Source: Vitrella brassicaformis CCMP3155 (lineage: Eukaryota > Protista > Chromerida). From it: DNA of 64,000 nucleotides. The position numbers were made by a program, and so were the translations under genes. The notes under the pieces were generated by a model. That model was not told the DNA's origin, searched no databases, and saw nothing but the letters and a program-made list of their open reading frames with translations. The stretch is taken from positions 3,974-67,973 of the forward strand of contig CDMY01000485.1 in NCBI GenBank assembly GCA_001179505.1, written 5' to 3'. Of the stretch, positions 15,899 to 60,371 are shown one piece after another. Each line of letters begins with the position of its first letter. Positions within the stretch are counted from its first letter, which is position 1.

Positions 15899-17528
15899 TC
15901 ACAGGATGGCCTTGAGACTATACTCGCGGTATGCCCCCCCCCAAAAGGCTAGTGTGGCCGGCAGGATGACCCGCCGCACCTCCCCCACACGCATGTCAGT
16001 GAAGACCTCCTGCCACCACTTCTCCCGATCAGACACACGACCCTCCCACCCACGATTCTCGCCTTTCTTGTCTCGTCCGTCAAAGTCGTCACGCCAGTGG
16101 ATGTAGTCGTACCAGACGCACTGGTTGCGTGTCGGTTTGGGCCCACTGCCCTGCTGCACCACTCGGAAGTGCGCACCAGACGGCAACCGAATGAACACAT
16201 CACCGCCGCTGCCCTGGCCATGCGGAGAGCTGCGAAGAGGAAGAGAGGGAGCCAATCATAACGTCGCCGATCACTTCTCCCTTCCGTCTCACCTGTGCGT
16301 GTCGATGCCGTACATGGCGGCCGTCTTGTTGAAGGACTCCTGCTTGGCCACGCCGTCCAGCTGGAGTGGCGCCTTGACACCCTCACCAATCAGCAGCTGT
16401 GTGTCGGTGAGTGAGGCAGCGTGTCGTTTGCGGCGGTAGTAGTCCACCAGACGGCGGACGTGGTCGACAGGCACATCCTCAACGGGAGACGGCCACCTGA
16501 TCGACGACAACACACATACCATATGCCCGTGTTGTTGTGTGCTCTCCTGATGCTCACATATCGAATCGGTTGCGCAGCCCGATGTCGCCCATCTGGTCTA
16601 GAGTGTACTGCACCGTCGAGACGAACATTCCGCACACATCGACCGACCGGATGGGATCGCCGCCACTCAGAGGCGCCAGGAAGGGCGTGACGGCCTGATG
16701 TGCAGACCAACAGACAGACAGACAGACGCACTCATGGACAGCCTGCAGTGCTTCGGTTGTCCTGATTTCTCTTACTCACCTTGATTTCGATCATCGCCTG
16801 GTCGTATACCGCCTTCTTGGCCGCCCGGTCCCTGTCGAGCTCCTTCTTCTTTGCTGTGAAGGTCTTGATGAACTTCTCCACCTCGGCCACGACCCCTCTC
16901 AGTTCTGGCAGCACCCCCTGTGACGGCAGGGTCGGCTCTTTGGAGTTCTTTGGTGTGGCTGCAGATGCGTCAGTGGGCGACTTGTCGATGGGCGACAGGA
17001 GCAGTGCCGTCCAAAAGTCATGAAGACCTGGGCGCAATACACACACACACACATACACACACATACACACACAAATGCAGGAGACCATGAGTGGTTGCTT
17101 CGCGCTTCATGACCTTGATAGTTGCGCTTCTTCGCATCGTCCACCAGGTGGTCAACCGAGTCCTCCCCGCCCAGCAGGTCCTCGAGCATCGCCTCAAACG
17201 CACGCGGACACACATCGATGAAGATGCGGTTGTCTGCATCACGACCCAGCCGCCCATCCCATCGGCCACCGAGCAGCACCGCCAGCAGGGAGCCCTTGCT
17301 GCTCGTCAGGTGCTTCCGACGAACACAGCACACACTCCCGCCGACGTTGAGCAGCAGCAGGTCATCACCAGAGGCCGCCGAGCCGTCAGACGCGCCGTGG
17401 TCGCTCAGCAGCCTGCCGACGTTGTAAGTCGATGCGATCTCTGCGCGCTCTGCCTCGAGGCTCTCCATTGGGCCGAGGATCTGCCTGTCCAGTCGGCAGA
17501 GGGCCTCATGGCGAGTGAAGGGCTCCAT
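15899..17528 (-). CDS. BTB - coiled coil - BTB-like - FKBP-like protein, copy 3 (divergent, apparently intact)
   Basis: LLLLNVGGSVCCVRRKHLTSSKGSLLAVLLGGRWDGRL...IFIDVCPRAF, then LHDFW, AVTPFLAPLSGGDPIRSV, WPSPVEDVPVDHVRRLVDYYRRKR and an FKBP-like exon ending AIL*. Exon positions match the other copies. Confidence 0.85.
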
Positions 17529-17821
17529 GACAGCAGACCTGACGACAAACGGCAGATGAATGAATTCATCAGATCTTCCTGATCACAGTCTCTGTATGTC
17601 ACTCCTCAGCTCTCCTCTTACCTCTTTCTTCTGCTTTCAATGGAGTTTTCACAACGGCAGCTGGAGTTTTCACAATCCTTGCGGGCTTTGATAGTGCTTT
17701 GATTTCTTTCGAAGCAAAGCTCGGCGTCGAGGGCGTCACACAAGTGAGGCAGGAGCGAGACAGCAATCAAAATCGAGCCAGATCTATCATGCTTGTGTGG
17801 TTCACAGGCACATCTGTGACG

Positions 17822-19421
17822 ATGGATGGCGATTTCAGCGTGCCGGCGATGCAGCTTCAGCTGCAGGGGCCATTGACGGCCATCAGCGACGCCATCGGCA
17901 ACCCGCATGGGCAGATCCGCCAAGCCGACGACGACGCCCATCGAGAGAGGCAGAAACACGGCGCCTCCGACCCGTCAAGCGCATCGCCCGATGACGAGCT
18001 GATGTTGAGTGTGGGCGGCGTCGAGTGGCATGTGAGCCGCAAGCACCTGACGGAGGGCGACGGCGTGGAGGGCACTCTGCTGGCGGCGCTGTTCTCGGGC
18101 TGCTGGGACGGCCGGCTGAGGAAGGACGACAAGCAGAGAGTGTTCGTGGACGTTTGCCCAGAGGCCTTCAAGGCCATCCACAAGGCCATCCTCGACGCCG
18201 TCACCCTTCGCAGTGCGGGCAAGACGGTGTCGGTCGGTCACCTGCTGGGTGAGGCCACCAAGCGGGACTACAGAGGTGAGCAGAGGCACAGAGGTCAGCT
18301 ACGCTTCTATTGGGCTGTGTGATGAAGGTTCGCATGACTTCTGGGTCAAGCTGCTGCTGTCGCCGCTCGACAAAGCGGCCTCAGACGCCCCTCCAAGGGC
18401 CGATGGCGAGCCCTCCATATCGGCCACTGACAGCCCCGCCGAGAGTGACGACACTGTCAAGACGGTGGAAGCCATAGTCAAGGCGTTCGCCGCTGAGAGA
18501 GCCCGGCTGAAGGGGCTGCTGGCGTCCGCGAGGCGACGATACACAAACCTCGACAACGAGATCAAGGTGACACACACGATGGGACGAGAGGAGCTACTCA
18601 TCTGGTGCGCCCTGTTTGTGTGTCTGTGTGCGACCAGGCCGTCACGCCATTCCTGGCACCTCTGAGTGGCGAGGATCCCATTCGGTCAGTGAGGGTCTGC
18701 GGCCACGCCATCGCCACCACACAGTCCACCGTCGACGAAATGAACGACAAGCTCAAACATCGCTTCGACATGTCAGCCACACACGGACAGCCTGACAATG
18801 ACAGAGATGCACACCGATGGCTGCCCGTGTGTGTGTGTGTGTAGGTGGCCGCGGCCCGTCGAGGTGGTGCAGCCCGACCACATCGGCCATATGGTCGACC
18901 ACTACCGCCGCAAACGGCTCGGCGCGTCGGCGGCCGACATGGCTGCGTCGCTGACGATGGCCAGTGCGACAGAACAGGCAGCCTTGAACATCAACGCGGC
19001 CATGTACGGCGTCGAGACAGACATAGTCATCTCAGACACCAGGTGGACAGATCGAGGGCAGCAACAGGCCGGGCTGGTGTCGCCATCTGTCGTCTTGTTT
19101 GCCTTTGAAGTGGCGATGTCTTCACGCAGATGCCGTCTAGAGTGCGGTACAAGATCGTGCAGCAAGGGGGCGGACCCAAACCGACACGTGACCAGAGGAT
19201 CAAAGTACGACTGGCTTCAGTGGCGTGATGACTTCGACGGACAAGACAAGAAATGCGAGGACCGTGGGCGGGAGTATCTTGTGTCTGGGTTTGATTATTG
19301 GGCCCAAAAGGTCCTCACTGACATGCGTGTGGGGGAGGTGCGGCGGGTCATCGTGCCGGCCGGAGTGAGTTACAGCAGAAAGGAGCTGTACATGGAGTAT
19401 AGTCTCTTGGCCATTCTGTGA
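17822..19421 (+). pseudogene. BTB-FKBP-like copy 4 with a +1 frameshift in the FKBP-like exon
   Basis: Exon series matches the other copies. At about 19200 it reads AGGATCAAAGTAC where copy 1 reads AGGATCAAGTAC, giving a premature TGA near 19226. This could also be a consensus error. Confidence 0.75.
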
Positions 19422-19850
19422 GCACTGCCTCCTAGTGCGTCATTGGAAAGAAGGCCATCCTGTGAGTGTTCGTCGGGGACGGGCGGTCAGTGCCGTGTAC
19501 GTGTGGCGGTGTGTCCCTTTGTACGTTTTTTGCATGCTTACGGGGGCTGCTAAGTGATGTGTGTTGGGTACCTTTGGCGCGAAGGGTATTTCTCTGTGTG
19601 CCTGATGTGTGTGGCGAGCAAGTGATGAGACCTGTTTTATTGCAAGCGCACGATGACCGGTGCAGATGCCTTTTATCCAATGGTGTGTGGTGTGACAAAC
19701 CATCACGGATGCCAACACGCTTGACTGAGATCGTGACCCCCACCGCATCAGACCCAGAGAGCAAGACAGATGCAAACACATACGTCAAGGACACACAGCG
19801 ACCGACTTGTGACTGGTCGACCCAGCAGTCCATGCCAACGAACTCAACCC

Positions 19851-22313
19851 TCACTCTTCACTGCAATCTTCAAAGGCTACGCGCTGCCCCTCGGCATCGC
19901 GAGACCTCGCCTCCACACACAGGTCCTTGAGTCGTCTAGCGGCTTTCTCGGCCTCATCCCAGCCGACTTCCTCCACGGGATCTCGGTTGGCCTGGTGCTC
20001 CGTGGTGATAGTGGCGAGGGCTCCGTCAAGCGTTTTCTCTACGCCGGCGCGCTTCGTGAGGATCTCCTGCGTGGATTGGTTGCACTTGGGGCTCATGAAT
20101 GCCAGATGGCTGAGCACTAGTGCCACAAACCTGCACAGAGACAGACAGACACACAGACAGACAGACAGACAGACAGACAAGCAGGCAGAGACATGCGATC
20201 GTGCACACAGCTTTTCGCGTCTCACTTTATGAGGCCTGTGTGTGTGGGATGCTCCTCCATGGCCGAGATCAATAGCTCTATACCCTGTCAGTGTCTCAAG
20301 CAGGGATAAGTAAGGCTACCTACTGCATGCCTCTCATTCCTGACCTCACCTCATTCTCGATGATTTTGTGGTGACCAAGATCGACCCTGATGCACAAACT
20401 GCGTGCACACAGAGACACGACCCCACAATAATATGATGCGCCTCGAGGGCGGCATAAGGGATGAGTGGCCGTGTTGTCCGTCTGTCTGCCTCAAGGTGAG
20501 TCTACCTACCAGTATAAGAGTTGGGCGACTGCGTTGCACACCTTGCCGTCCTCGACAAATCTCCTCAGCCCAGTGAGGACCCTGACCAGCCCGTCGTCCT
20601 TCAGCAGCTTGGCACGCAGAGTCGAATCATTGGCCGAGATGGCTGCAATCGCATGGCAGCCCAACCCAAAGACGTCCTTGTCGTTCTGATGCACACGCAT
20701 GGCCTCCATTATGTGACCTATCAGTCAAGGGTGAGACAGGAAAGAAACTCAGTGTGATTGGGTGCAATTGATCAGGCAGGCGCAACATGTACGTCTCGTT
20801 ACCGAGAGCCAGCTTGTTGTCGAGGCTCTGGACGCCGTCCTCCTCAAGCCCGATGATGGACAGCAGCTTTGACAAGCTCTGTTGGACCTTCGGGTCATGC
20901 TTGTGGAACCCCACTAGCTCCAGCATGAAGCTCAGATCTTTTCGAAAACTCACTCGGGTCACGTGCCGGCGATTCGCCCTACTCTTGAAGCACATTCTGA
21001 GCCGACGGACAGACAGACAGACAGACGTGACCTCCTGTCTGTCTAACTGATGCCATGCTCACGTACTTGGCGATCGCAAGTAGGCATAGATGGACCACTC
21101 GACCGCTCACCACACCATATTTTCGCGCCACTTCAGCGATTGCGGGAAAACACACGCCCAGCTCTGGTCATAGAGAGCACAAGACATGATGTTAGCAAAC
21201 AGGCGTCTTCGTGAGACGCCTCGCACCTTCAGCTTTTGGGCCATTCGTCGAGGCCTCGATGATCTTCTTGAGAGCCGACTCAATGATGGGAAAGTCTCGG
21301 TCAAGGTCTCCTGTGTGGCAGAGACGTTCATGCAGAGGAAAGCATTTGTGTGTCTCTCTTTTGCTGCTGGTCGGTACCTGTGAGGCTTCTGAGGTTGGCC
21401 ATGATTGCGTTTGGCAGTTGGATGTTGTCAATGTCCATCTCATCTAGCTTGGATGCTGTAGCGCAAGCCGCTCTAACATGCGACTGTTCCTGACAGACCA
21501 CCGTAGGCAGGCAACAAGGGGCAGAGCATCGCAAATGAGACACATCCTCTACATCGATCGATCAATCGCTTCCAAGACTGCCTGAATCACCACATTGGCG
21601 CTGCGATGACCCATTGTGGTTGATGAGCTCGCCTCCTGACGCTTCAAAGTTGTACCGTTGCTGTGATAGAACAGACGCAGGTGACAGAGTGTGAGCACAT
21701 GTACTCTCTCTCTCTCTCCAACTCACCTATGGGTATCTGCAAAAACGATGATCTTGTCTTTCGCAGAGGCCGGCAGGGAGCGCAGTTCGCCGTCTACTAC
21801 TGTGGCATATCCTCCATGGCCGTCAGCATACACTGGGCAGCCGTCCAGCAGACCAACCGCCCGAGACCGCCTGTCGGGCTCCTGCACAAAACAAACACAC
21901 AACCATGGTTCGTTGACCTGTCTTCCCCTCTGTATCGGTGTGTGGTCAGTCACCTCTGCCAGACAGCCTCCCGACGGCATCCTTGCGTCCGAGAGGCTCT
22001 CGGTGTCAACGGGCGGCCGGCCCGGCCCGCCACTGCCCCGATGGACGATTCGCTGCATCCCGCCAACCAATCAGAAAGTGAGACCTGCACGCACCGCAGG
22101 ATGACACGACATCCCACATGAATCAGATTCAGAGCGGTGCCGTGCCTGTGTCTGATCTGAATCATCTGACCGTCTGTCGGTGGGCCGTGTGCGGGATCTG
22201 GTGGTTTCAGAGGAGGGGGCCTGCATGAAATACACACAGATATGAAAGGACCTCGTCGGATCAGCGGTTGCCGTCACCCTTTGCCCACCTGTTCTTCCCT
22301 CGGCAGGTTTCAC
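19851..22313 (-). CDS. Armadillo/HEAT-like helical repeat protein, multi-exon
   Basis: Exons join in frame with ARM-like repeats: ELGVCFPAIAEVARKY, FMLELVGFHKHDPKVQQSLSKLL, IMEAMRVHQNDKDVFGLGCHAIAAIS, GLVRVLTGLRRFVEDGKVC and GIELLISAMEEHP. Stop at 19851. The 5' exons and start are uncertain. Confidence 0.6.
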
Positions 22314-22471
22314 CTGCGAGCTGAGACGCCCACTGGCGGCGAGCTGAGAAAAACTCTCTCCAAAAGCACCAGATCATCCGAGGCACTGAAAGGTACGAGA
22401 GAAATGCACACACTCATGAGACTTATCAACTGCTGTGTTTGTTGTATTGTGTCAGATCTCCCCGCTCTGGC

Positions 22472-23584
22472 ATGTACAGCGACGTCAGGAAGCTGGTGGC
22501 CGACGCCCAAGCCGCCATCGGCCATCAAACCGAGGTGCCAGGCAGCGACGCCAGTGCGGCCTCCAAGCTGGTGCTCTTTCACTCGCCGACGTCGGTCTGC
22601 AGTGAGAAGTGTCGCACGGTGCTCTTCGAGCTCAACCTGCCCTTCACTTCCCACGCAGTCAACATCCTGGCTCACGACAACTATCACCCAGCGTATGTGG
22701 CCCTGCGTGTGGCGGCTTGGCAGCAGAGTGGCCTTCCCATGGCCGGCGAGAGCGACTATGAGTGGACGGGCAGCAGCAGCGTGGCGGCCAACGGCGTGGA
22801 CTGCTGCGTGGTGCCCACCTTAGTGGATATGAGGGGCGACGGCGAACCCAAGATCGTCATCGACTCATCGGCCATCTGCGAGCACCTGATGGCCGGCACC
22901 GGCCTCCTGCCGGCCGACCCACACAAGGCGGCGATTATAGAGAAGCACATCAAGCTGGTGGACGAAGTGCCCCACCCCGCGCTGCTGTATGAAGGCAATT
23001 CCGTGCACGACAACCGCCCCTGGTTCGCCAAGGTCATGATCGGCAAGGCACACTCCGGGCAGATCGCCGCACTCAAGAAGCGCCTCGCCGAGAAGGGCAA
23101 GACATGGGATGACCCACTGCTGGAAAGGGCCTACAAGGCCAAGGTCAACAAGACCAAGAAGGGGCTGGCCGCGCCGTCCAAGCCGACATACCTCACAGCA
23201 GCTGTGGACAAGACGATGAGTGTGCTCAAGGAGCTGGAAGCCGACCTGGCGGCACACGACGCAGATGGCGGCAGCAGCTATGTCTCCGGCGACAGCATCA
23301 CTGCGGCAGATCTGTTCCAAGCCGTCAATCTGCACCGCCTGCTGCTGCTGGGCAACAGCTGGATGTGGCAGGACCTGCCCCATGTGGCAGCATTCGCCGA
23401 CCGGATGCTGTCGCGGCCGTCGATCCAGAAGGCCGTGATCACCTACCCCGGCATGATCCCCTCACGGCCGACAGCCGACCTCATCACGAAGGATCAAGGC
23501 TTCATCGCTGGCTTCATCCACGGCAGACGCGTCGATTTCCTCAACAGCCTCGTGTTTGTCATGCGACTTATCGGCATGGCTTAA
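22472..23584 (+). CDS. Glutathione S-transferase, LinD (2,5-dichlorohydroquinone reductive dechlorinase)-like; CDS has no introns
   Basis: A single 370-aa ORF with a GST-N fold (LFHSPTSVCSEKCRTVL...VVPTLVD...IDSSAICEHL) and GST-C (ADLFQAVNLHRL...PHVAAFADRMLSRPS). The upstream intron at about 22393-22456 appears to lie in the 5' UTR. Confidence 0.9.
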   Translation: MYSDVRKLVADAQAAIGHQTEVPGSDASAASKLVLFHSPTSVCSEKCRTVLFELNLPFTSHAVNILAHDNYHPAYVALRVAAWQQSGLPMAGESDYEWTGSSSVAANGVDCCVVPTLVDMRGDGEPKIVIDSSAICEHLMAGTGLLPADPHKAAIIEKHIKLVDEVPHPALLYEGNSVHDNRPWFAKVMIGKAHSGQIAALKKRLAEKGKTWDDPLLERAYKAKVNKTKKGLAAPSKPTYLTAAVDKTMSVLKELEADLAAHDADGGSSYVSGDSITAADLFQAVNLHRLLLLGNSWMWQDLPHVAAFADRMLSRPSIQKAVITYPGMIPSRPTADLITKDQGFIAGFIHGRRVDFLNSLVFVMRLIGMA

Positions 23585-24418
23585 GATGGGGTCTGCCCTC
23601 CTTTGGCATCACGTGCACGAGCTCCGAGAGGGTGCTCTGTAGGTGATTGACAGGGCGGAGGTGCGTTGTGGATGTATGTATGTGTGTGGAGTGAGGGAGA
23701 TTTACTGTGTTTTGCTGTCTCTCAGTGGCTCATCCGATCGACGAAGGGCAAAGGAGTGCTCTTGCTGCATGCAGAAGCCAGCACATAGATGCCTGGCTGG
23801 CGTGGAGGATTGTCTGCCTGTCTGACTGTACGACGCGGTTTTTGTAGATGGAAGGGCAGTCATTTGGAGTCAGTTTGGATGTGTGAGGGCTCTGCCGCTT
23901 GCTTGAGAGTGTGTGTGGCGACACTTTCTGATTCCGTCGACACACTTGTCTGCCGTAAACAATCCTTCCGACCAGCAGCAGGTTTATGACTATGAATATG
24001 AATGGCGCCGAAAAGGTGCTCTGTGATTGACTAGGTCGTGTGTGAAGGCGGCAAGGGATGTGGTGTGTTAGGGTGTGAAGTTGACTCCGAACAGTCAATG
24101 TACATCGTATGTGTTTGCATCTGTCTTGCTCTCTGGGTCTGATGCGGTGGGGCTGACGCTCTCAGTCAAGTGTCCATCCATCAATGGTTTCTCCCACCAC
24201 ACACCATTGGATAAAAGGCATCTGCACCGGTCATCGTGCGCTTGCAATAAAACAGGTCTCATCACTTGCTCGCCACACATCTCAGGCACACAGAGAAATG
24301 CCCTTCACGCCAAAGGTACCCAACACACATCACTAAGCAGTCCGTCAGCATGCAAAAACGTACGAAGGGACACACCGCCACACGCACACGGCACTGACCG
24401 CCCGTCCCCGACGAACAC

Positions 24419-26065
24419 TCACAGGATGGCTAAGAGCCTGTACTCGATGTACAGGTCCTTTCCAGTGGAGCTGAGTCTGCCCGGCTTGATGACCCGCCGC
24501 ACCTCACCCACACGCATGTCAGTGACGACCTCCTGCCACCACTCAGCAAACCCAGACACACATAAGACCCGCCCACGGTCCTCGCCTATCTTGTCTTGTC
24601 CGTCGAAGTCGTCACGCCACTGGATGAAGTCATACTTGACGCGCTGGCCACGGGTCGGTTTTGGTCCACTGCCATGCTGCACGACTTGATGGAAGACACC
24701 CGACGGCAACCGAACAAACATCCGCTGCGTGAGGCCATCGCCACTGCAATGGTAAACAGGACGACAGATGGCGACACCAGCCCGGCCTGTTGCTGCCCTC
24801 GAACTGCACACCTGGTGTCTGAGATGACTATGTCTGTCTCGACGCCGTACATGGCCGCGTTGATGTTGAAGGCTACCTGCTCAGTCTCACTGGCCATTGT
24901 CAGCACCACAGCCATGTCGGCCGCCGACGCGCCGAGCCGTTTGCGGCGGTAGTGGTCGACCATACGGCCGATGTGGTCGGGCTGCACCACCTCGACGGGC
25001 CGAGGCCACCTACACACAAAGGCACACACACGCACACACAGGCAGCCATCGGTGGGTATCTCTGTCATTGTCAGGCTGTTCATGTGTGGCTGACATATCG
25101 AAGCGGTTATTGAGCTTGTCGTTCATTTCGTCGACGGTGGACTGTGTGGTGGCGATGGCGTGGCCGCAGACCCTCACTGACCGAATGGGATCCTCGCCAC
25201 TCAGAGGCGCCAGGAATGGCGTGACGGCCTGGTCGCACACAGACACACAAACAGGGCGCAACAGATGAACAGCTCCCCTCTCTCCCCCCATCCTGTGTGT
25301 CACCTTGATCTCGTTGTCGAGGTTTGTGTATCGTCGCTTGGCGGCCTCCAGCTGCCCCTCCAGCCGGGCCGTCTCTGTGTTGGCTGCCCTCACGATGGCC
25401 TCCACGGCGCTGACCAGGGACCCACTGTGGGCGGGAAGGCTCTCGGCCGATATGTTGGGCTCGCCATCGGCAGTCGGAGGGGCGTCTGAGGCCGCTTTGT
25501 CGAGCGGCGACAGCAGCAGCTTGACCCAGAAGTCATGCAAACCTGCACCACACAGCCCAATAGAAGCGTAGCTGACCTCGCGGCGCCTCTGCTCACCTCT
25601 GTAGTCCCGCTTGGTGGCCTCATGCAGCAGGTGGCCGACCGACGCCGCCCTGCCTGCGCTGCGAAGCGTCACGGCGTCGAGGATTGCCTTGTGGATGGCC
25701 TTAAAGGCCTCTGGGCAAACGTCCACGAAGATCCTCTGCTTGTCGTCCTTCCTCAGCCGGCCGTCCCAGCAGCCCGAGAACAGCGCCGCCAGCAGAGTGC
25801 CCTCCACGCTGTCGCCCTCCGTCATGTGCTTGCGGCTCACATGACACTCGACGCCGCCCACACTCAGTGTCAGCTCGTCATCGGGCGATGCGCTTGACGG
25901 GTCGGAGGCGCCGTGTTTCTGCCTCTCTCGATGGGCGGCATCGTCGGCTTGGCGGATCTGGGCATGCAGCTGGCCGATGGCGTCGCCGATGGCGGTGACA
26001 GGCACGTGCAGCCTATCGAGAATCGCAATGGCGCTGAACTTGCGAGCGGCCAAGTCGGCGTCCAT
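24419..26065 (-). CDS. BTB - coiled coil - BTB-like - FKBP-like protein, copy 5 (apparently intact)
   Basis: Starts MDADLAARKF. BTB ELTLSVGGVECHVSRKH...LFSGCWDGRL. Same exon structure as copies 4 and 6. FKBP-like exon ends AIL* at 24419. Confidence 0.88.
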
Positions 26066-26479
26066 CGTCGCTGCTCAACAGATCTCTCAGACCTCTCTGT
26101 GGTGAGCACCTGAATGTCACACAGACAAACGGGATGAATAGATCTTGTTCTTGTTGACTGCTGTGTCACACCCTTGCCTCACCTGATGACATCAGGGCGT
26201 CAGATGATGCCAAGATCTCCTCCGTGCCTCCCTTCTTCAAAAGTCTGAGCTTGCAGGACGCGTGGGAAGGGACGGACGTGGATGTTCACAGCGGGGCCCG
26301 CGGCAGAGGTGTCGTTGCAGGACGACACAGCTTGGGTTCAGGAGCGCGGGATGGATGTATGGATGACTGAATTGATGCCCTTTCCGCCGTATGACGTCGG
26401 CATGGCATCGGATGCGATGTACTTATGGATGCCTCAGGCAGAGGATGATCAGTCGGCCCAGACCACACCATCGGGCACC

Positions 26480-29042
26480 ATGATTAGCAAGGTAAGTAAG
26501 AGAGATCTGGGTCGGAATATGACCCCATGAGTGATCAACAGGTTTGCTGGTGTGCTGTGGTGTGCGTTGTTTGATGCAGTTGTGTACTGACGCTAGTTTG
26601 TTGCGCGAGGGCCTCCAGAGGCTGCAGAGGGACGCACAGCAGAGCCGTGAGGCGTGCCAGCGAGATGGCGGCGGGGTGGCCGAGGCGTTGCTCTCGTCTG
26701 TGGTGTCACAAGTGTCCGTTGCTGAGGCCTCGATGGCCGGTGCAATGGACTCCCTCACCGCAACGGCGGCCATAGCCCTCCCGCAGCCAATGGACGACGT
26801 CAGTGCGTCCGCTGCTGCTGCTGCTGCTGCTGCTGTGGCCATGGAAGCGCCGCCCGAAGAGCCCAATGCTGAGGTCCGGAGGGAGGGATGAATGCGGGGT
26901 GGCATCTGTTCATTTCTGTGCTGTTGCTGTGTTGCTGGCTGGTGCAGAGTAGTGCTGTGGTAGAGGAGGAGGAGGCCGCCCCGACGCCATCGTTTCGCCT
27001 GGTCCACACGTCGGGGAAACCGCCGCCGAACAGTGGACCGGTAAAAGCAAGACAACAAAGACCGCCCATACGTGCACGACCCTGTCGACCTCTGTGTGTG
27101 AATGTGTGTCTTGTACAGCCGTCCCTTCGCCTCTCCCCCGATGAGCTGGCGTGTGTGTTCGGCTTCTACCAGCCCTCAGAGCTGACGCGCGTCGCCACCA
27201 CGATCGGCAAGACGGTCTTCGGCTGGGCGGCCAAGCGATACACCCACCTGACCATCGACGGCTCGGACAAGGGCGGCGTGCGCCAGCAGTGGGAGCGAAT
27301 GCCCCTGGAGGTGGCACACCGGTGGGGCCAGCGGGCCACCAACCTCACACACCTGCACGTCATCTACAAGAACCAAGCCAGCCGCTGGTGCCGTGGGACC
27401 TGGGTGGCGCTGATCGACGGCAATGCAGCGGCCAGGAAGGCCATGAGCCGCGAGAGGGAGGGGCAGTGCGGGGCAGCGGCAGCAGCCAGAGGGCCGGACA
27501 GGCCATCCGCGGCGTCATCCATCAAGGTGCTCAGCTTCGAGGAGGACAGCGACGGAGAACCATACGATGAGGGTGAGGACGTCTCGTCCGCCCCCCTGCC
27601 CCCGTCCCCCTTGCCCGTCGACCTGTCGGTCCTCGAGGAGGTGCACGACATGCCATACGCCTGTGCGGCCGTCCGCATGGGCGACCGCGTGTGGCAGACG
27701 CCATCCATGCGGGTCATGACGCTCAAGCAGGACGAGTGCGATGCTGAGGCCGTGATGGCAAAGTGGATGGCGTCGTGCGAGCATTTGGAGGTGTTTGACG
27801 ACGGAAGCATCTTCGAGATCACGACAGAGCTGCTGACCATGCCGCCCCCCGGCACCTCCCTCGTCCGCCTGCGGTCCATGGGCACCCTCAACCTGGACAC
27901 CGTCGGCACCATCAATCCAGGTCGGGTGGCCGACCTGCGGCAGGCCCTTGTGGCGCGGGGATGTCACATGTCCCTCCGCGAGCTGCCCATTGAGGCCACC
28001 GAGATCACGGCTGAGCACAAGGGGCTGCTGCGGGAGGTGCCGTCGCTGTCGGCGGCAGTGCTGCAGCCGGAGGCCCTCAGCCAGCCGCAGGTGGTCAAGA
28101 AGGCAGACAATCTCGAGATGGAGCTGGAGCTCATCGAGTGGATGGCCGAAGAAGCGCCTCAGGTAGCCAAGACACCACGGGCTGCTGCGCCTCAACACCT
28201 TCAGGCACAATTATCCCCAATGCGGTCTGTCTGTGTGCCTGCAGGTGCAGAAGCTCGTTCGAGAGTTTGCCGCTGTCACCGATGTGGTCTTCTACAAGAA
28301 CGAGCTCACCGACCCCAACGCCGCCGGACACGCGGCCGCATATTTCCCCCGCGCCACCACATTCCGCTGCAATGCGGGACAGCTGCCGCCGCGGGTGCGG
28401 AGCGGCTTGGCCAAGACGGTCGCCAACATGCCCCAGTGCAACACCATCGAATTCGTGGATAATCTCGAGGCGCACCAGGAAGCGCCGAAGAATGCTGTGG
28501 CCTTCCTGGAGTCACTCAAGAGGCACATGGCCACAGGGAAGGGGCCGGGGGCCGGGGAGGGGGGCGATAGCACCGAGGGGGCGACGGAGCGGAGCCTGTC
28601 AGTGCAGATTGAGGTGTCGGCGAATGGCATCTTGCACCACAGCCGGCCGCTGCAGAAGTGGGCGAGCCACGACCTGCCGGCCATCGACGAGGTCACCGTC
28701 TTTGTGATGGGTAAGCACAGTGGGTAAGCAGGGCCACACGAGGTAGACAGCCCACCTGAGCAGCACACACATCACAAGCTTTATGTGTGTTGGCTGCTGT
28801 GTGCAGACGGGCTAGAAGAGGACGACTCGATGGAGGCCTTGTACGGCTCGGTGATGGCGTCGCTCGTCGGCATCATGTCGCGACCCGGTGTGAGCAAGGC
28901 GTCCATTGTCTTCCTGAGTCTTCACGACCTTGGCCATATGAGGCGGCTGTTCCAGTCGCAGCTCGCATGGTTCAACCTGCTGGACACACCATACACCATC
29001 ACCATGGAGGAGGTCACCATCACCGTCGAGACGCGCACGTAG
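26480..29042 (+). CDS. Uncharacterised F-box-like protein, copy A (multi-exon)
   Basis: In-frame exons MISK / LCTDASLL... / SSAVVEEE... / PSLRLSPDELACVFGFYQPSELTRV (F-box-like) ... / VQKLVREF... / DGLEEDD...ITVETRT*. It has a paralogue at 35016-37632. The F-box call is weak. Confidence 0.7.
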
Positions 29043-30479
29043 ACGATACCACAGCTGGTGAAAGGGAACGAACAGGGCGGACAGAGAGGGCACGTGTGTG
29101 CATCTACTTGGTCGTCTGTTATGTTTGTGTGTGCGGTTTCAGGTAGCCGTAGACATCGGCAGCCTGACTGCTGTTGGGGCATTGGTGGCTGCGGGCGGGG
29201 CGGAGGGGAAAACAGCCGATCGAATCTCTGTTGTTGATTGTGGATAGACACTAAAGGATAAATGGACGGATGGATGGATGGGGATATGTGTTGCGTGCAG
29301 CGGCTGTCAATGAGTGTGTGAGACCAACTGCTGGAATAACATGAATCCGTGTGTATACATAAGCTGGGTCCGCATCGGCCTCATCGACTTCACTCCCCAC
29401 TCCCGCTGGCCCCTTGCATGATGCACGTGACATGAGATCGTCAGCCATTATTCGAACACACACATGTGGTTCTTGTGCTGTCCTTATGTGTGGTATTATG
29501 TCAGGTGTGTGTGCTATGCGGAGCGGTGCTTTCTCGCTCGCCTCGAGACACTGGCCAAACACATGATCTTCCTCAGGATAAGATGGACGCACTCTCGTAT
29601 CGCATCGCCGCTGTGCGGCTGTTTGTCTTATCGGTCGCTAGGGTCGGGCCCGAGCAACACGGCAGCGACATACTCACCAGTGTCACCACCATCAAACCGT
29701 CAGACGCTGCGGACCGGGTGAGGTACACCGCAGCGTGTCTGAATACGTACACCGACAATGTCTGTCTGCCTCTTTGCAGATTTGTGGCATTGGTGCTCAA
29801 CCAGCAAGGGCACCAGGTGGCTGTGGTGATGGGCTCAGGAGGGCGGCCTGAGTCGCGTGTGCCGAGTGTGCTGTGTCTCAAGTTGCGAGACTGACTGACT
29901 GACTAACCTATGGGTCTTGAGTGTGTGATCTTCCACTCACGCACAGCCACTGTTGTTCATTCGTCCGTATATGACAGACATACAGTAGATAGCCATTCAT
30001 GAGCTGACTGACTGAGGACCGAGGATCTGATGACACTGTATCTGTGAGCTTGAGGGGTTGCGCTCTTAAGGTGTATTCAGCAATGTGGCCATTCAGGCAG
30101 GCAGATCGAAAGAGAAGAGACATATCGCGAGGAGACTTGCGAAATCGGCACATCGAGCAGGGGGCGGCAATTGTGGGCTGGGCGTCTCGCGCCAGGGCAC
30201 CCCGTGGGGCGAAGATGTGGGGTTTGCTGCACACGCAGCGCAGCCCCCGTGTGCAGGGCCAGGACGGCGGCAGTGTGAGAGACTGCCCCAGTGGTGTTGA
30301 TGAGACGTGCTACATCCAGCTGCCGAGAGTCGACGAGGGCGACGCTGCCGCACAGCAGGCCATGATCCACCACACACAGACAGACCATCCCAAGGTCACC
30401 CTGCAATGCCCTTGTGGCACAGTGGCCAGCGGAGGCCTCTGACGAGTGGCGTCTGTGTGCGTCTGTCTGTCCACTGCAG

Positions 30480-32246
30480 ATGGCGTCGGCCTCGAGTGAG
30501 CACATTCCTCTGCTGCTGGACGATGGCCAAGGGCTGACGGAGCCCCAGCTGCCCGACGTCACCGATGACATCACCAAGGCACCGAGACGCTTCGAGCAGG
30601 TGGGTTGGTGTCAGTCGACTCTGAGGCCTCTAGGACGTCTGTGTGTCGTCTGCAGGTCCCCTTGGTGGGCGCCCCGGCCGCCGACAATTGGTATCCGACA
30701 GATGCACTGAGACGCAGCATCAGATGGGCCATCGACGACAAGGATGCGGAGGGCCTGCGGAAGGTCCTCGACGGTCTGTCGCCTGAGCAAACCGAGAAAG
30801 TGCTGACGACTGGATGGGAATATGGGAGCTCTGCCATCCACTACGCCGCACGTAGGCATCGTCGCACCACTGCACACACATGATGCAGCTGAGTGGCCCC
30901 TGTGTGTGCTTCTCAGTCAAGTGTACGGATGTGGCGGTGTTTGAGGTGCTGCTGCACAACCGACACGACCTGCTTTACCTGAAAGATAAGGTGTCGTGCT
31001 GGACCATTACACTCATTCCGCTCATTAGCCGGCCGATATCTTTCTTCTGTGTCTGTAGGAGGGCGACACGCCTCTTCACAAGGCAGCACAGAAAGGGTCA
31101 GTTGGTTTGTGGAGCAGTCTGTCGAGTGGGGCGGAGAGGAGCTGCTGGAAGCTCGGACCAACGTTAGGACGAGGGAAATCTCGACTGGTGCATCGAACAG
31201 CAAGCGTCTTCTGTCATGCTGTGATTCAGATTGGCTGGAAGATTGGCTGGACGCCTCTTCATGATGCAGCATGTCAGTCACTCCTGCAAATGATAGCCAC
31301 ACAACTACATGAGTCTTCAACGTGTCTCTCCTGCAGTCTCGGGCCATGCCGATGTGGTGGCGGTGATGTTGAAGGTGGACCCACAGCTCTTGAAAATCAA
31401 AACCAGCGTAGGCTGCCCGCACCAATCGACTCTGGTACCTCAACTGTCCCCGCCCGCTAATGTGACAGGAGGGAAAGACGCCTTTCGATTTTGCCCTCAG
31501 AAAGCCGAAAGTCGTCGCTGTGATGGCTGTCGTGGCTGGAGACGTGGCCATGAAGCTGCTCGAGCAAGGCGCGAAAATGGAAGAACTGGACGCCCATGAT
31601 CTCAAGGAGGTGGTGCCTTTCACGAAGGGGTTCCTGAAGGACCGCTCTGATTCGCTGGGCCTCGACAGCCTTCGCTTGTGTGCCTTCTTCCGCAAGCTGA
31701 TGCAGGCACGACAGAAGGACTCCCTCACAGAGTGCGATTGAATGGAGAGGAGGGGACATCATGCGAACATCTGCATGCTTCTTCGTCTCTCTCTCTCCTC
31801 TCTTTTCTTTTTCGTTCTTCGTGCAGTGACTTTGAGAATATTTCCAACTGGCAGGAGGTAAACAGTAAGGACACACACAGTCTTACTTGTCGCATTGATT
31901 GGGGGGTACGATCCGGGTCAGGCACTCACAGCGACTTTCTGCAGCGATACCAGGATGCAAAACTTTGAACAGTCACTTAGAGGCAAAGAGAAAGAATGGT
32001 TCGCGGCGCTCGAGTCTGCGGAGCCCCTCACAGTAGTGACTCAAGGTAGCCAACACAGAGACTTCACCCCCTTTTGGCTGTCGGCCGCTCATGGCGTCGT
32101 CCTTCTGCCAATGATTGTGACAGCCAACTCCATCTCTCTCGTCACAAAGCATTGGCAGCCGCCACCAGTTTTCAGGATAGGCTGCTTTTGCCGGTCGATT
32201 GATTTTGGACCCCGTGATGTCTTCATTACCCGCGTGCTGTCAATGC
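30480..32246 (+). pseudogene. Ankyrin-TRP channel copy A: frameshifted and truncated before the pore
   Basis: Ankyrin exons are homologous to copies B and C. There is a 1-nt deletion near 31107 (GTTGGTTTGTGGAG versus GTTGGTGTTGTGGAG). The first TM exon breaks at 32246 and runs straight into sequence that is the 3' flank of the intact copies. Confidence 0.85.
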
Positions 32247-33066
32247 GAGTGCATGTGTGTGGATCGGCAGAAACCAGTGAGTCCGTGGTTGGTTGCGTCT
32301 GGTGGATGTCTGTCTGTGTTAGGCCAATGGCACGGCAAAGCATAGCATAGCATAGCGTCATATCGGTCCCCAGCGCTCTTATCGTCCAGCCCCACGGGCG
32401 TCGCTCTCTCTCTTCAGATTCGCTCACAGTCAGTCAGTCCGCTACAGAAAAAAAGGAGGCGCAGGTACACAGCTCACCTCACCCCTCACACAGCAGCTCA
32501 CACCACACCATAGCATAGCAGAGTCAGTATGGCACACACACATGGAGGTCCCATGCACCACACGCAGCACAACACAGCACCACCGGCGAGAAAGTACAGT
32601 GGATCAACCGCACCACGTCGTCAACAAGACACCACTCACCCACCAGTCCCCCTGACCCAGCAGCCCAACCCCATCCCACATCACCCCGACCATGGCCCCA
32701 CTCGCCGTGCCGCCCCCCACTGCAGATTCGGGGCGGCACGGCGCACAGCAGTGAGTGCACGGCAGGCAGACACGTACGTGAGAGCCTCGCCCACACACAT
32801 TTCGCTGAGCATCCCCTGGACACGCATTTCATCAGCATGCCTGGTACATGAATTTAGCTGATTTCGAGGTCAGTCATCTGCACTGATCGTGCGCTTGCAA
32901 TAAAGCAGGTCTCATCAATCGCTCGCCACACGTACACAAAAGGCACACAGAGGTGTGCGTTCACGCCCAAGGTACCCAGCACACATCACTTAACAGCACA
33001 CTACCATGCCACGGGAGAGTAGAATCCCGGCCCCGACAAACACTCACGCGAGGGAGGAGAGAGAGC

Positions 33067-35015: not shown

Positions 35016-35396
35016 ATGGATGCCTCGGCGGCAGAGGATCATATGTCGGCCCAGACCACACCATCGGGCACCATGATTAGCAAGGTAAGTCAGAGAGATC
35101 TGCCGGAATATAACCGATAAGTGACAACAGGTTTGCTGCCGTGCTGTGTGTGTTTTCGTTTGATGCAGTTGTGTACCGACGCTAGTTTGTTGCGCGAGGG
35201 GCTCCAGCGGCTGCAGACGGACGCACAGCGGAGCTGCGAGACGTACCAGCGAGATGGCGGTGGGGTGGCCGAGGCGTCGCTCTCCTATGCGGTGTCACAA
35301 GTGTCCGTTGCTGAGGCTGCCGTGGCTGGTGCAATGGACTCCCTCACAGCAATGGCGGCCATGGCCCTCCCACAGCCAATGGACGACGTCAGTGCG

Positions 35397-35427
<31 letters not shown>

Positions 35428-37632
35428 TGGCCATCGAAGTGCCGCCCGAAGAGCCCGATGCTGAGGTCCGGAGGACTCAAGAGGGATGGGTGCGGGGTGG
35501 CATCTGTTCATTTCTGTGCTGTTGCTGTGTTGCTGGCTGGTGCAGAGTAGTGCTGTGGTAGAGGAGGAGGAGGGCGCCCCGACGCCATCGTTTCGCCTGG
35601 TCCACACGTCGGGGAAACCGCCGCCGAACAGTGGACCGGTAAAAGCAAGACAACAAAGACCGCCCATACGTGCACGACCCTGTCGACCTCTGTGTGTGAA
35701 TGTGTGTCTTGTACAGCCGTCCCTTCGCCTCTCCCCCGATGAGCTGGCGTGTGTGTTCGGCTTCTACCAGCCCTCAGAGCTGACGCGCGTCGCCACCACG
35801 ATCGGCAAGACGGTCTTCGGCTGGGCGGCCAAGCGATACACCCATCTGACCATCGACGGCTCGGACAAGGGCGGCGTGCGCCAGCAGTGGGAGCGAATGC
35901 CCCTGGAGGTGGCACACCGGTGGGGCCAGCGGGCGGCCAACATCGCCCACCTGCACGTCATCTACAAGAACCAAGCCAGCCGCTGGTGTCGTGGGACCTG
36001 GGTGGCGCTGATCGAGGGGAATGCCGAGGCCAGGAAGGCCATGAGGGCGAAGAGGAAGGAGAGGCAGGGCGGGGCAGCAGCAGCAGCGGCAGCAGCCAGA
36101 GGGCAGGACCTGCCATCCGCGGCGTCGTCCATCAAGGTCCTCAGCTTCGAGGAGGACATCGACGACGAGCCGCACCACTACGACGATCAAACTCTACCGG
36201 TGGACCCCCTGCCCCTGTCCCCCCCGCCCGTCGACCTGTCGGCCCTCGAGGAGGTGCATAACATGCCATACGGATGTGCGGCCGTGCGCAAGGGCCGTCG
36301 CGTGTGGCAGACGCCGTCGGTGCGGGCCATGACCTTCAAGGAGGACGACGGTTATTCGAGCGACGCGGCGGGATGGATGACGTCATGCGAGCATCTGGAG
36401 ACATTCGACGATGGCGGCCCGACAGCCCGCTCCAAGCTGAGGCTGCTGTGCATGCCGCCACTGGGGAGCTCCCTCGCCCGCCTGCGATCCATCGGCCCCC
36501 TCAAGCTGCGGAGTGATGAGGCTGTGCAGACAGTGGACAACCTCCGGCAGGCCTTTGTGGAGCGGGGATGTCACAAGTCCCTTCGCGAGCTGCCCATTGA
36601 GGCCACCGAGATCACGGCGGAGCACAAGGGGCTGCTGCAGGAGGTGGCCCTGCTGTCGGAGGCAATGCTGCAGCCGGAGGCCCTCAGCCAGCCGCAGGTT
36701 GTCAAGAAGGCAGACAATCTCGAGATGGAGCTGGAACTCATCGAATGGATGGCCAATGAAAGACCTCAGGTAGACAAGACACCACGGGCGGCTGCGCCTC
36801 AACACATTCAGACGCAGTTGTCCCCAATGCGGTCTGTCTGTGTGCCTGCAGGTGCAGAAGCTCGTTCGTGAGTTTGCCGCTGTCACCGATGTGGTCTTCT
36901 ACAAGAACGAGCTCACCGACCCCAACGCCGCCGCACACGCGGCCGCATATTTCCCCCGCGCCACCACATTCCGCTGCACGGCGGGAGAGCTGCCGCCACG
37001 GGTGCGGAGCGGCCTGGCCAAGACGGTCGCCAACATGCCCCGGTGCAGCACCATCGGCTTCGTGGATAATCTCGAGGCGCACCAGGACGCGCCGAAGAAT
37101 TCTGTGGCCTTCCTGGAGTCAGTCAAGAGGCACATGGCCACAGGGAAGGGGCCGGGGGCCGGGGAGGGGGGCGATAGCAACGAGGGCGAGACGGAGAGGA
37201 GCCTATCAGTGAACATTGAGGTGTCGGCGAAAGGCATCTTGGACCACAGCCGGCCGCTGCAGAAGTGGGCGAGCCACGACCTGCCGGCCATCGACGAGGT
37301 CAACGTCTATGTGATGGGTAAGCAGTGCCACACGAGGTAGACAGCCCACCTGAGCAGCTCACACATCACGAGTATGTGTGTCGCTGCTGTGTGCAGACGG
37401 GCTAGAAGAGGACGACTCGATGGTGGCCTTGTACGGCTCGATGATGGCGTCGCTCGTCGGCATCATTTCGCGACCCGGTGTGAGCGAGGCGTCCATTGTC
37501 TTCCTGAGTCTCCACGTCCTTGGCCATATGAGGCGGCTGTTCCAGTCGCAGCTCGCATGGTTCAACCTGCTGGACACAGCATACAGCGTCACCATGGAGG
37601 ACGACACCATCACCGTCGAGACGCGCACGTAG
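35016..37632 (+). CDS. Uncharacterised F-box-like protein, copy B
   Basis: Same exon series as 26480-29042 and open throughout, ending ITVETRT* at 37632. Start is either MDASAAED (35016) or MISK (35073). Confidence 0.7.
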
Positions 37633-39344
37633 ACGATACCACAGCTGGTGAGAGGGAACGGAGAGGCCGGACAGAGAGGGCACGTGTGTGCATCTACTTG
37701 GTCGCCTGTTGTGTGTGTTTGTGTGTGCGGTGTCAGGTAGCCGTAGACATCGGCAGCCTGACTGCTGTTGGATGAAGTATTGGTGGCTGCGGGCGGGGCG
37801 GATCTCTGTCGTTGATTGTGGATAGACACTAAAGGATAAATGGATGGACGGATGGATGGGCATATGTGTTGCGTGAAGCGGTTGTCAATGACTGTGTGAG
37901 ACCGACTGCTGGAATACCATGAATCCGTGTGTATACATAGGCCTATGTGGGTCGCATGGGCAGATGTGTGTGAGTGCAGCGGTTGTCAATGACTGTGTGA
38001 GACCGACTACTGGAGTAACATCAATCCGTGTGTATATATATTGGGTGGGTCCGCATCGGCCTCATCGACTTGACTCATCACTCCTGCTGGCCCCTTGCAT
38101 GATGCACGTGACATGAGATCGTCAGCCATTATTCGAACACACACACGCGGTTCTTGTGCTGTCCTTTGTGTGGTATTATGTCAGGTATGTGCTATGCAGA
38201 GCGGTGCTTCCTCGCTCGCCTCGAGACACTGGCCAAACACATGATCATCCTCAGGGGAAGATGGACACACTCTCGTATCGCAGCGCCACTGTGCGGCTGT
38301 TTTGTTTTGTCTTAATGGTCGTTAGGGTCGGATCGGACCAACACGGCACCGACATGCTCACCAGTGTCACCACCATCAAAACATCAGACGCTGCGGAACG
38401 GATCCCACATATATGTACACCGACAATATCTGTCTGTCTGTCTGTCTGTCTCTGTGCAGCTTTGTGGCATCAGTGCTCAAGCAGCAAGGGCACCAGGTGT
38501 GTCGTGTGTGGCTGCGGTGATGGCTCAGGAGGGCGGCCTACGTCGCGTGTGCCGAGTGTGCTGTGTCTCAAGCTGCGCGACTGACGTGACTGACTAACCT
38601 ACGGGTTTTGAGTGTGTGCTTTTCCTCTCCCCTTCGCTCTGCCACTGTTGTGCATACGTTCATTCGTCCGGATATAGTCAGGATAGACATAGATAGCCAT
38701 TCATGAGCTGACTGACCGAGGAGCGAGGATCTAGATCTGATGACATTGTGTGTGCAGCAGCAGTATGTTGTGTGAGATACGTTAACTCATAGCCCAACGG
38801 CAGGAAGAGTCTGGCGGTCTCTCATGTAATGAACTGCGTCAACATAGTATCTGTGAGCTTGAGAGGTTGCGCCCATAATGTGGCACTGTATGTGTGCGAG
38901 GAACGACTTCATGTGTGTTCAGCAATCTGGCCATTCAGACAGGCAGATCAAAATAGAAGACACAGCTTGAAGAGAGGCGATGAAGAGAGTTGCGGCATGC
39001 AGCGTGGGGGCGGCAATTGAGGGCTGTAGCCGCTGCACTCTTGCCGAGTCGCGCCACAGCCCTCGTGGGAAAGATGTGGGGTTTGCTGCGCACGCAGCGC
39101 AGCCCCCGTGTGCAGGGCCAGGAGGGCGACAGTGTGCGAGACGGCCACAGCCGCCCCAGTGGTGTTGATGAGGCGTGCTACATCCAGCTGCCGAGAGTCG
39201 ACGAGGGCGACGCTGCCGCACAGCAGGCCATCCACCACACACAGACAGACCATCCCAAGGTCACCCTGCAATGCCCTTGCTGCACAGTGACCAGCGGCTG
39301 CCTCTGACGCCTGGTGTCTGTGTCTGTCTGTCTGTCCACTGCAG

Positions 39345-59710: not shown

Positions 59711-60371
59711 CCCCCAGCTGCACGTGCGAGCTTGAAGTTGGATATGAGCAATTAGGCCTCTTCCCTGCCTTGCCGTGCCTTATGTGTGTGTGGACTCCCT
59801 CGCCGGCTAATCGTCATTGGGTGCAATACACACAAAGGTATCTGCCGCCTCTCTCGTGTCTCTAGTGGATGTGTCCTTGTTCATCTCCGCGGGCCTGTGT
59901 CTCGGTGTGTCACCTGTAAGCCCGCCTGTGTGTTGATGTGTGTCGTCGGACTGGTGTGAGTGGTCGATTTATGGAGGACAGACTTAACTAGTGCATTTGA
60001 GTATACCAACGAATGCATTCAATGGGTGAGACAGCGAGTGGAAGATCAGTATGCAGTGGTCAGGTCAGTCTGTCAGTCGCGCAGCGCCAGCTCCCTGAGC
60101 CGCCTCGCTTAAGCTTTACGACACCGTCGGCACGCGAGATCGATAAGCCACCCTCCTGGGCCATCATCACAACACACCCAGACAGACAGACAGGCAGACA
60201 GACAGACACCCTCGATGAGCGCACATGAAGTATACACCGTTCTGGATGGGCCAGATTTGCTTCAACGCACATCAAGTCCGTCACACAAAAGTCCCTCAAG
60301 CTCACAGATCTACAGTGTCATCAGCTCCTCGGTCCTCAGTCAGATCAGCTCATGATGGCTACCCTGGGTCG

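Follow-up and report, generated by a model that had tools for sequence, protein, structure and literature searches.

Does the chromerid alga Vitrella brassicaformis CCMP3155 carry a dehalogenase gene captured from bacteria? The question is raised by a gene within a 64,000-nucleotide stretch of its genome (GenBank assembly GCA_001179505.1, contig CDMY01000485.1, positions 3,974 to 67,973 of the forward strand), which we refer to as the window and whose first base is position 1. The predicted product is a glutathione S-transferase (GST) that resembles LinD, the 2,5-dichlorohydroquinone reductive dechlorinase of Sphingobium, and the initial annotation took it for a bacterially derived haloaromatic dehalogenase, possibly anchored in a membrane. 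Having compared the gene with its bacterial and eukaryotic relatives, we consider it likely that this is a nuclear Vitrella gene for a predicted competent, glutathione-dependent LinD-like GST, belonging to a eukaryotic subclade that goes back to one old transfer.

Family membership and sequence features

The Vitrella GST gene occupies an open reading frame (ORF) at 22439–23584 on the plus strand, in which the first ATG, at 22472, opens 370 codons that end in TAA. The initial claim that this 1.1-kb coding sequence (22472–23584) lacks introns holds; it is unbroken across the full homologous span, and full-length bacterial homologues cover query residues 2–3 to ~340–352. The annotated linD gene matches residues 26–340 (85% of the query) at 34.4% identity with an E value of 4e-39; linD matches were taken from a tblastn search against plasmids, which returned Sphingobium indicum UT26S (pCHQ1) and seven other records, and the LinD ORF itself came from locus L003. 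LinD from S. indicum/japonicum UT26 (pCHQ1) has 346 amino acids (aa), compared with 370 in Vitrella, and is homologous over its full length. An exhaustive search yielded 308 related clusters at E ≤1e-3, most of them 320–400 aa long and aligned end to end, and a scan of species genomes confirmed 217 bacterial loci, almost all from Pseudomonadota, Alphaproteobacteria included. Identity to the Vitrella GST is 30–38% among the best 80 of these 217 loci.

Structural comparison points the same way. In the Atlas search a 347-aa proteobacterial cluster ranked first (template modeling scores 0.81/0.86) and GDAP1L1 second (0.66), and the AlphaFold2 (AF2) model has a canonical GST fold (predicted local distance difference test, pLDDT, 92.3; predicted template modeling score 0.92). 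Among solved structures, the best match by sequence is GDAP1 (phmmer against the PDB, E 7.5e-12), mainly over residues 164–321, which align with GDAP1 residues 134–292 with few gaps and span the long C-domain insertion listed below. No zeta-class or PcpC chain is among the PDB matches at E ≤1. Pfam assigns generic domains only (GST_N_2/GST_N_3 and GST_C_2/GST_C_3), and no NCBIfam model scores above threshold, FzlA and Atu5508 being far below it.

Judged from its sequence, the gene encodes a GST-fold protein of the family that includes bacterial LinD. The protein combines full-length homology, the family insertion together with R79 and D119, intact glutathione-site residues, and a position in the LinD-like part of the tree described below. 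Its initial assignment to the LinD family, rather than to GDAP1 or the ordinary GSTs, is borne out by the strength of the linD match, by the insertion, and by a fully supported split from GDAP1-like proteins. The features of the gene are as follows.

22472–23584, plus strand: complete single-exon coding sequence for a LinD-family GST fold (ORF list, Pfam, linD match and AF2 model)
22574–22615, plus strand: strand β1 and the start of helix α1, residues 35–48, with S41-x-C43-S44-x-K46-x-R48
22727–22807, plus strand: LinD-family-specific insertion between helix α2 and strand β3, residues ~86–112
22808–22828, plus strand: strand β3 (VVPTLVD), with the canonical GST cis-proline P115 and the LinD-family D119
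22862–22867, plus strand: D131-S132 at the start of helix α3
22961–23191, plus strand: long helical C-domain insertion, residues ~164–240, in common with the α-loop region of GDAP1
23492–23581, plus strand: C-terminal extension of the eukaryotic clade beyond the end of bacterial LinD, residues ~341–370

Conservation was read from two family alignments, one of 25 sequences and one of 81 rows (18 eukaryotic LinD-like, 48 bacterial LinD-like and 15 GDAP1-like). The motifs first noted in the Vitrella protein are all present, in the same order as in the LinD family, and are conserved in both alignments: LFH..S.CS.K.R, ENY.P.YV.LR, TG.SSV...G.D..VVPTLVD and PH.ALLY...D.RP, followed by L..AY.AK, ADLF..V.L.R and RPS...A.I..PG..PS. 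Invariant or nearly invariant residues are S41, C43, S44, K46, R48, Y71, Y75, R79, G100, G108, D110 and P115 in the N-terminal half and L117, D119, D131, S132, I135, D164, P167, D180, P183, K224, D280 and R289 in the rest. LinD has in common with the Vitrella GST the N-terminal helix, the S-x-C-S-x-K-x-R motif, the α2–β3 insertion and the long C-domain insertion.

At the N terminus, where DSSP assigns strand to residues 33–37 and helix to residues 42–53 of the AF2 model, the 25-sequence alignment shows no variation at S41, S44 and R48 and at least 90% conservation at C43 and K46. In the larger alignment S41 is found in 17/18 eukaryotic and 48/48 bacterial rows, and C43 in 15/18 and 48/48. By analogy, S41 is the putative glutathione-activating Ser and C43 the putative resolving Cys. 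The α2–β3 insertion includes T99-G100-S-S-S103-V104...G108-x-D110, of which G108 and D110 are invariant; it is present in 18/18 eukaryotic and ~47–48 of the 48 bacterial LinD-like rows, while the 15 GDAP1-like rows are all gapped there, and in this respect it sets the LinD-like proteins apart from GDAP1 as originally noted. R79 is invariant across LinD-like rows, whereas the GDAP1-like rows have N in its place. P115 and L117 are invariant in eukaryotic, bacterial and GDAP1-like rows alike, and D119 only in LinD-like rows. D131 (15/18 eukaryotic and 47/48 bacterial rows) and S132 (16/18 and 47/48) form what we take to be the E/D-S pair that binds the γ-glutamyl group of glutathione. The C-domain insertion includes D164, P167, D180, P183, Y221 and K224; of these, D164, Y221 and K224 are conserved across the eukaryotic, bacterial and GDAP1-like groups, each of which also has P167 and P183 in most of its rows.

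LinD lacks the ~30-aa C-terminal extension of the Vitrella GST, as do the other bacterial rows. In Vitrella the extension consists of the motif G-F-I-x-G-x-x-H-G-R-R-V-D and a short, moderately hydrophobic end, and it aligns with those of P0002, P0003, P0008, P0009 and an orthologue at locus L099; the extensions of the eukaryotic clade have the motif G-W/F-x-x-G...R-K/R-x-D/E in common. The hydrophobic tail of the initial annotation (FLNSLVFVMRLIGMA) is indeed present, with a Kyte-Doolittle (KD) mean of 1.75 over 15 aa. The last 15 residues of the protein include an Arg, however, and no 19-aa window exceeds KD 1.0. AF2 predicts a confident helix at residues 344–369 (pLDDT of the block 92–97) with KD 1.1 and a hydrophobic moment of 0.12, not amphipathic, that contains R352, R353, D355 and R366. 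Because this helix is moderately hydrophobic, holds charged residues and is not amphipathic, membrane anchoring of the Vitrella GST is doubtful; peripheral membrane association, or packing of the helix on the core, is equally possible.

The Vitrella protein ends ~12–17 residues past the extension motif, and the L099 orthologue does so similarly. In P0008, P0012 and P0013 the extension runs on into a ~19-aa hydrophobic segment (KD 1.8–2.1; weaker, at 1.18, in P0002), and P0002 and P0012 terminate in basic residues, the classical tail-anchor pattern. Several relatives in the eukaryotic clade are thus predicted to carry a genuine tail-anchor; in Vitrella the corresponding helix is shorter and weakly hydrophobic. 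Could a transmembrane tail lie hidden in a 3' exon of the Vitrella gene? This was ruled out: tblastn with the C-termini of nine relatives gave no exon downstream, and no hydrophobic segment appeared past the stop when the three forward frames of 23530–24420 were scanned for hydropathy. Another member of the eukaryotic clade, P0041 (624 aa), has a ~275-aa N-terminal extension with no recorded Pfam domain, the query aligning to its residues 276–571.

Eukaryotic relatives and phylogenetic position

The nearest relatives of the Vitrella GST are eukaryotic, at 42–51% identity, compared with at most 38% among the best 80 bacterial loci. In their clade, each of the six members whose evidence could be read is eukaryotic, and named bacterial genomes are absent. 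The P0007 contig also carries genes for mitochondrial ribosomal protein L47 (MRP-L47), PAP-fibrillin and FBPase; P0002 adjoins an O-fucosyltransferase (O-FucT) gene; the P0004 cluster includes a transcript from the Marine Microbial Eukaryote Transcriptome Sequencing Project (MMETSP), and P0154 is an MMETSP transcript; P0043 has a UCH (ubiquitin) hydrolase gene as its neighbor on a 1.76-Mb contig with few genes; and P0047 adjoins genes for an HSF-type (heat-shock) factor and a CS-domain protein. The L099 orthologue has a 156-nt GT-AG phase-0 intron (L099:6348–6503) with an in-frame TGA inside. The intron opens with GTAAGG directly after exon 1 (...IVVDSK), and its pyrimidine tract runs up to a CAG ahead of exon 2 (VICEYL...). 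On the Vitrella GST its position corresponds to the junction of S133 and A134. The two exons were read separately, in L099:5946–6410 and L099:6474–7223 (contig ctg12944l, ENA assembly ERZ25878734). Prokaryotic gene callers cut this gene into P0052 and a P0015-like ORF.

Trees were built with FastTree from 172 rows (130 bacterial vs 19 eukaryotic) and with IQ-TREE from 81 rows under LG+C20 with posterior mean site frequencies, support being given as ultrafast bootstrap/Shimodaira-Hasegawa-like approximate likelihood ratio test. The two trees agree on the GDAP1-like split, on a single eukaryotic clade and on its nesting among bacteria. In the IQ-TREE analysis the LinD-like and GDAP1-like proteins are separated at 100/100, and the eukaryotic clade, 18 clusters including the Vitrella GST, is monophyletic at 100/99 with deep internal branches of 0.4–1.4 substitutions per site. 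It lies within a group of 57 rows (95/82) that leaves out verified bacterial lineages, namely a Polaromonas/Pseudomonadota group and P0037, the latter with a TonB-dependent receptor in its context. Bacterial LinD-like sequences are monophyletic in 2% of bootstrap trees.

The initial annotation expected the protein to fall within a bacterial LinD clade rather than with GDAP1-like GSTs. The second half of this expectation stands, given the 100/100 split, but the first does not. The true LinD subclade consists of LinD, P0029, P0016, Hoeflea and Pseudahrensia, and forcing the Vitrella GST into it costs 117 log-likelihood (lnL) units and is rejected by the approximately unbiased (AU) test (p = 7.8e-8). 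Unlike LinD, the Vitrella GST therefore belongs to a separate eukaryotic clade, and it is not an orthologue of LinD. On the other side of the split, the GDAP1-like outgroup (P0113/P0180, P0141) was seen to include a protein from a metagenome-assembled Myxococcales genome and another labeled in IMG as a tetrachloro-p-hydroquinone reductive dehalogenase; as some of its members are bacterial, GDAP1-like GSTs occur in bacteria too.

Origin of the gene

An old bacterium-to-eukaryote transfer that is not specific to Vitrella is a plausible source of the gene. Specifically, one inter-domain transfer would date to the base of the eukaryotic clade and far predate the Vitrella lineage, and we think it fairly probable that the clade derives from a single early proteobacterium-to-eukaryote event of this kind.

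The lack of introns has to be read against the host genome. In Vitrella, 94.75% of genes have introns, with a median of 6 per gene (supplementary table, PMC4501334), which places the intron-less 1.1-kb GST gene in a ~5% minority. Domain searches of the Vitrella genome returned exon-sized split matches 35–100 bp apart; searches with PF00254, PF02214 and PF00520 found such split, exon-like matches elsewhere and none on the contig of the GST gene. The contrast in introns with neighboring genes is thus support at the level of the genome, rather than one of gene-by-gene exon structures within the window, where self-tblastn matches all frames between paralogues owing to their high DNA identity, so that introns cannot be defined in this way. 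In any case, absence of introns is not evidence of recent arrival, because a eukaryotic orthologue has an intron and because codon usage of the Vitrella GST is host-like. GC content at third codon positions is 0.82 in the ORF and 0.69–0.87 in verified host exons (pooled 0.785), and relative synonymous codon usage of the ORF correlates at 0.84 with host exons and at 0.70 with linD. We infer that the gene stayed, or became, intron-less after an old transfer.

The GST gene is single-copy in the genome and lies on a 68-kb scaffold, where the ~4.3 kb of unique DNA that contain it separate two Vitrella paralogues in inverted orientation. Its flanks, of 2.3 kb and 0.5 kb, have a GC content of 0.53–0.55, lower than that of the gene, and no bacterial gene was recognized in them, one flank ORF having been scanned against Pfam. 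Two per-run Logan assemblies, when aligned, match 20160–24135 at 100% without gaps.

20160–24135: contig L101 (run ERR558151)
21403–24106: contig L102 (run ERR558149)

Both contigs end no more than ~30 bp from position 24105, where the inverted repeat starts, short of the neighboring genes.

How, then, do other explanations fare? Reads from Vitrella are ~80% bacterial and 620 scaffolds were removed from the assembly (PMC4501334), and that the per-run contigs break off at the flanking repeats, with no bridge into neighboring genes, could likewise suggest a bacterial contaminant or a chimeric join. The closest relatives of the gene are eukaryotic, however, its codons match host exons, and it sits within a 68-kb scaffold between Vitrella paralogues, with lower-GC flanks in which no bacterial gene was recognized (one ORF Pfam-scanned), unlike a gene-dense bacterial contig. 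Contamination is therefore an unlikely source, and we give a contaminant or misjoin hardly any credence. A recent, direct transfer of a linD-type gene into the Vitrella or chromerid lineage, with the lack of introns as the mark of recency, draws on the intron-rich host genome and on a family that is overwhelmingly bacterial. Against this stand the higher identity to eukaryotic than to bacterial relatives, the deep branches of the 100/99 eukaryotic clade, the rejected grouping with LinD, the host-like codons and the C-terminal extension common to Vitrella and other eukaryotic members. With 18 clusters of eukaryotic context and an intron-bearing orthologue in that clade, the notion of a recent or Vitrella-specific acquisition had to be given up, and we regard it as very improbable.

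Less easily set aside is the view that the eukaryotic clade is ancestral, a sister group of the bacterial LinD-like proteins passed down vertically from the mitochondrial endosymbiont or an early eukaryote, or that transfer ran from eukaryote to bacterium. The concentration of the family in Pseudomonadota, including Alphaproteobacteria, would suit this view, as would the report that GDAP1 is closer to the GSTs of bacteria than to those of eukaryotes (PMC10104300), and a single bacterial clade is not rejected by the AU test. The best maximum-likelihood tree nevertheless nests the eukaryotes among bacteria, bacterial monophyly is rarely recovered in the bootstrap trees, bacterial diversity is far larger (see the row counts of the first tree), and no specific alphaproteobacterial sister group was recovered; we consider an ancestral or reversed origin unlikely, although less so than the two explanations above. 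As to function, the protein could instead be of the GDAP1 type, a GST-like adaptor or redox sensor that is tethered to a membrane and does not catalyze a reaction. That it falls on the LinD-like side of the 100/100 split, has the LinD-specific insertion and keeps C43, where human GDAP1 has Ser, all speak against such a role, and its tail has neither the length nor the apolar character of a classical transmembrane helix, which makes this alternative improbable.

An old transfer giving rise to a eukaryotic subclade of competent enzymes thus remains our preferred reading, and several points weigh against it. The constraint of bacterial monophyly is not rejected (AU p = 0.40, delta lnL 1.9), so the nesting is favored yet not established, and the direction of transfer with it. 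The IQ-TREE topology was rooted on the GDAP1-like group with animal GDAP1 absent from the tree, and this outgroup, whose rows have GDAP1 as their best PDB match, is itself partly bacterial. The PDB holds no solved structure of a LinD-family protein, and the roles of Ser41 and Cys43 are assigned by analogy. The Logan contigs, being gap-free, colinear with the genome and ending at repeats, probably consist of genomic reads interrupted at repeats and are no proof of expression.

The surroundings of the gene differ from those of linD in that no lin-type neighbors were seen: none of the ten neighboring ORFs scanned with Pfam matches a catabolic family. The scan gave one weak BTB_2 match, in ORF 16899–17528, which is a copy of the flanking paralogues. 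These inverted paralogous genes lie at 17800–19785 (plus strand) and 24105–26074 (minus strand), with 80–92% amino-acid identity; 19453–19785 and 24105–24431, the latter reversed, are 84% identical, and self-tblastn places further paralogues at ~300–1550, 14.7–17.3 kb and 33.0–34.7 kb. A second duplicated block pairs 26600–32800 with 35200–41050, with inverted copies near 53900–54450 and 57600–59850 (65–99% protein identity), and includes a 524-aa ORF (26888–28462) with no Pfam match and an 80%-identical copy at 35465–37066.

Predicted chemistry and the relation to GDAP1

What might the Vitrella GST do? The hallmarks of a glutathione site, namely the Ser of helix α1, the cis-Pro of β3 and the D-S pair of α3, are conserved in eukaryotic and bacterial LinD-like proteins, and together with Ser-x-Cys-Ser they lead us to guess at a thiol-dependent enzyme. 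As for substrates, several bacterial members join a LinD-like GST and an intradiol ring-cleavage dioxygenase (PF04444 Dioxygenase_N and PF00775 Dioxygenase_C) in one protein; these include P0188, P0189, P0193 and P0197 (~640 aa) and ORFs of 617–668 aa among bacterial loci L005–L084. In addition, linD and the ring-cleavage gene linE lie in one gene cluster with hydrolases and regulators. Fusion, in the manner of a Rosetta stone, and clustering both tie the family to the catabolism of hydroquinone and hydroxyquinol. Our best guess is that the Vitrella protein would be a thiol-dependent enzyme with substrates of the (halo)hydroquinone type; the haloaromatic dehalogenase activity initially proposed for it is inferred from homology.

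PcpC (tetrachlorohydroquinone dehalogenase) and the zeta-class GSTs have Ser-Ser-Cys at the start of helix α1; unlike the Vitrella GST, they have only ~215–250 aa and lack both insertions. In the reaction we propose, glutathione activated by Ser41 would attack an electrophilic (halo)hydroquinone or quinone, displacing halide or adding to the quinone. Cys43 would then attack the glutathionyl conjugate to release the reduced product, and a second glutathione would regenerate the enzyme. Such a Cys-dependent, two-step mechanism of reductive dehalogenation is established for PcpC and for DrcA, the DIF-1 (differentiation-inducing factor 1) reductive dechlorinase of Dictyostelium (PMC3205185). DrcA is a glutathione-dependent enzyme with a GST fold and a Cys that is essential to its active site, and in 2011 its authors described it as the first eukaryotic reductive dechlorinase with a mechanism resolved on its natural substrate (PMC3205185). 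It is, however, a Ure2p-like rather than a LinD-like GST, and the analogy to the Vitrella protein is functional only (PMC3205185). The natural substrate in Vitrella is probably a naturally occurring halogenated or oxidized phenolic, and metabolites of lindane are an unlikely substrate for a marine alga.

GDAP1 and GDAP1L1, metazoan proteins that are tail-anchored in the mitochondrial outer membrane, resemble the Vitrella GST in the long C-domain insertion and in S-x-x-S-x-K-x-R, and the tail-anchor of GDAP1 recurs in several eukaryotic LinD-like relatives. Human GDAP1 (7b2g_A, residues 19–71) reads H-S-F-S-S-Q-K-V-R where Vitrella has T-S-V-C-S-E-K-C-R, Ser replacing Cys43, and the GDAP1-like rows lack the insertion at residues 86–112. 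GDAP1 is reported to be without conventional GST activity, and the 2023 study that placed it nearer to bacterial than to eukaryotic GSTs left the bacterial family unnamed (PMC10104300). On the strength of the GDAP1 alignment and the common N-terminal motif, LinD-like and GDAP1-like proteins look like sister families. It is intriguing that the tail-anchored eukaryotic LinD-like clade is architecturally intermediate between them, although the tree does not make this clade the ancestor of GDAP1. A bolder idea, which we hold to be rather unlikely, is that eukaryotic LinD-like GSTs are the surviving kind of enzyme from which metazoan GDAP1 arose. GDAP1 would then have kept the C-domain insertion, S-x-x-S-x-K-x-R and the tail-anchor, and would have lost the α2–β3 insertion and, through replacement of Cys by Ser, the resolving Cys.

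Altogether, the Vitrella GST represents a eukaryotic branch of the LinD family, common to several eukaryotes, that had not been described before; in the literature searched we found no description of LinD-family proteins in eukaryotes, and the sole eukaryotic GST-type reductive dechlorinase met there, DrcA, belongs to another GST class (PMC3205185). This corrects an overstated picture: rather than a bacterial dehalogenase newly taken up by an alga, the gene is part of an undescribed eukaryotic enzyme subfamily, and nothing about it is mechanistically unprecedented. A eukaryotic, possibly membrane-associated LinD-like enzyme would be a candidate for the metabolism of natural halogenated phenolics in marine protists. 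Through the C-domain insertion, the N-terminal motif and the tail-anchors of relatives, the branch also links a bacterial catabolic family to the human disease protein GDAP1. Were the ancestry of GDAP1 to lie here, this Charcot-Marie-Tooth protein would gain an ancestral chemistry, in which conjugates of quinone or hydroquinone are reduced at a membrane in a thiol-dependent reaction.

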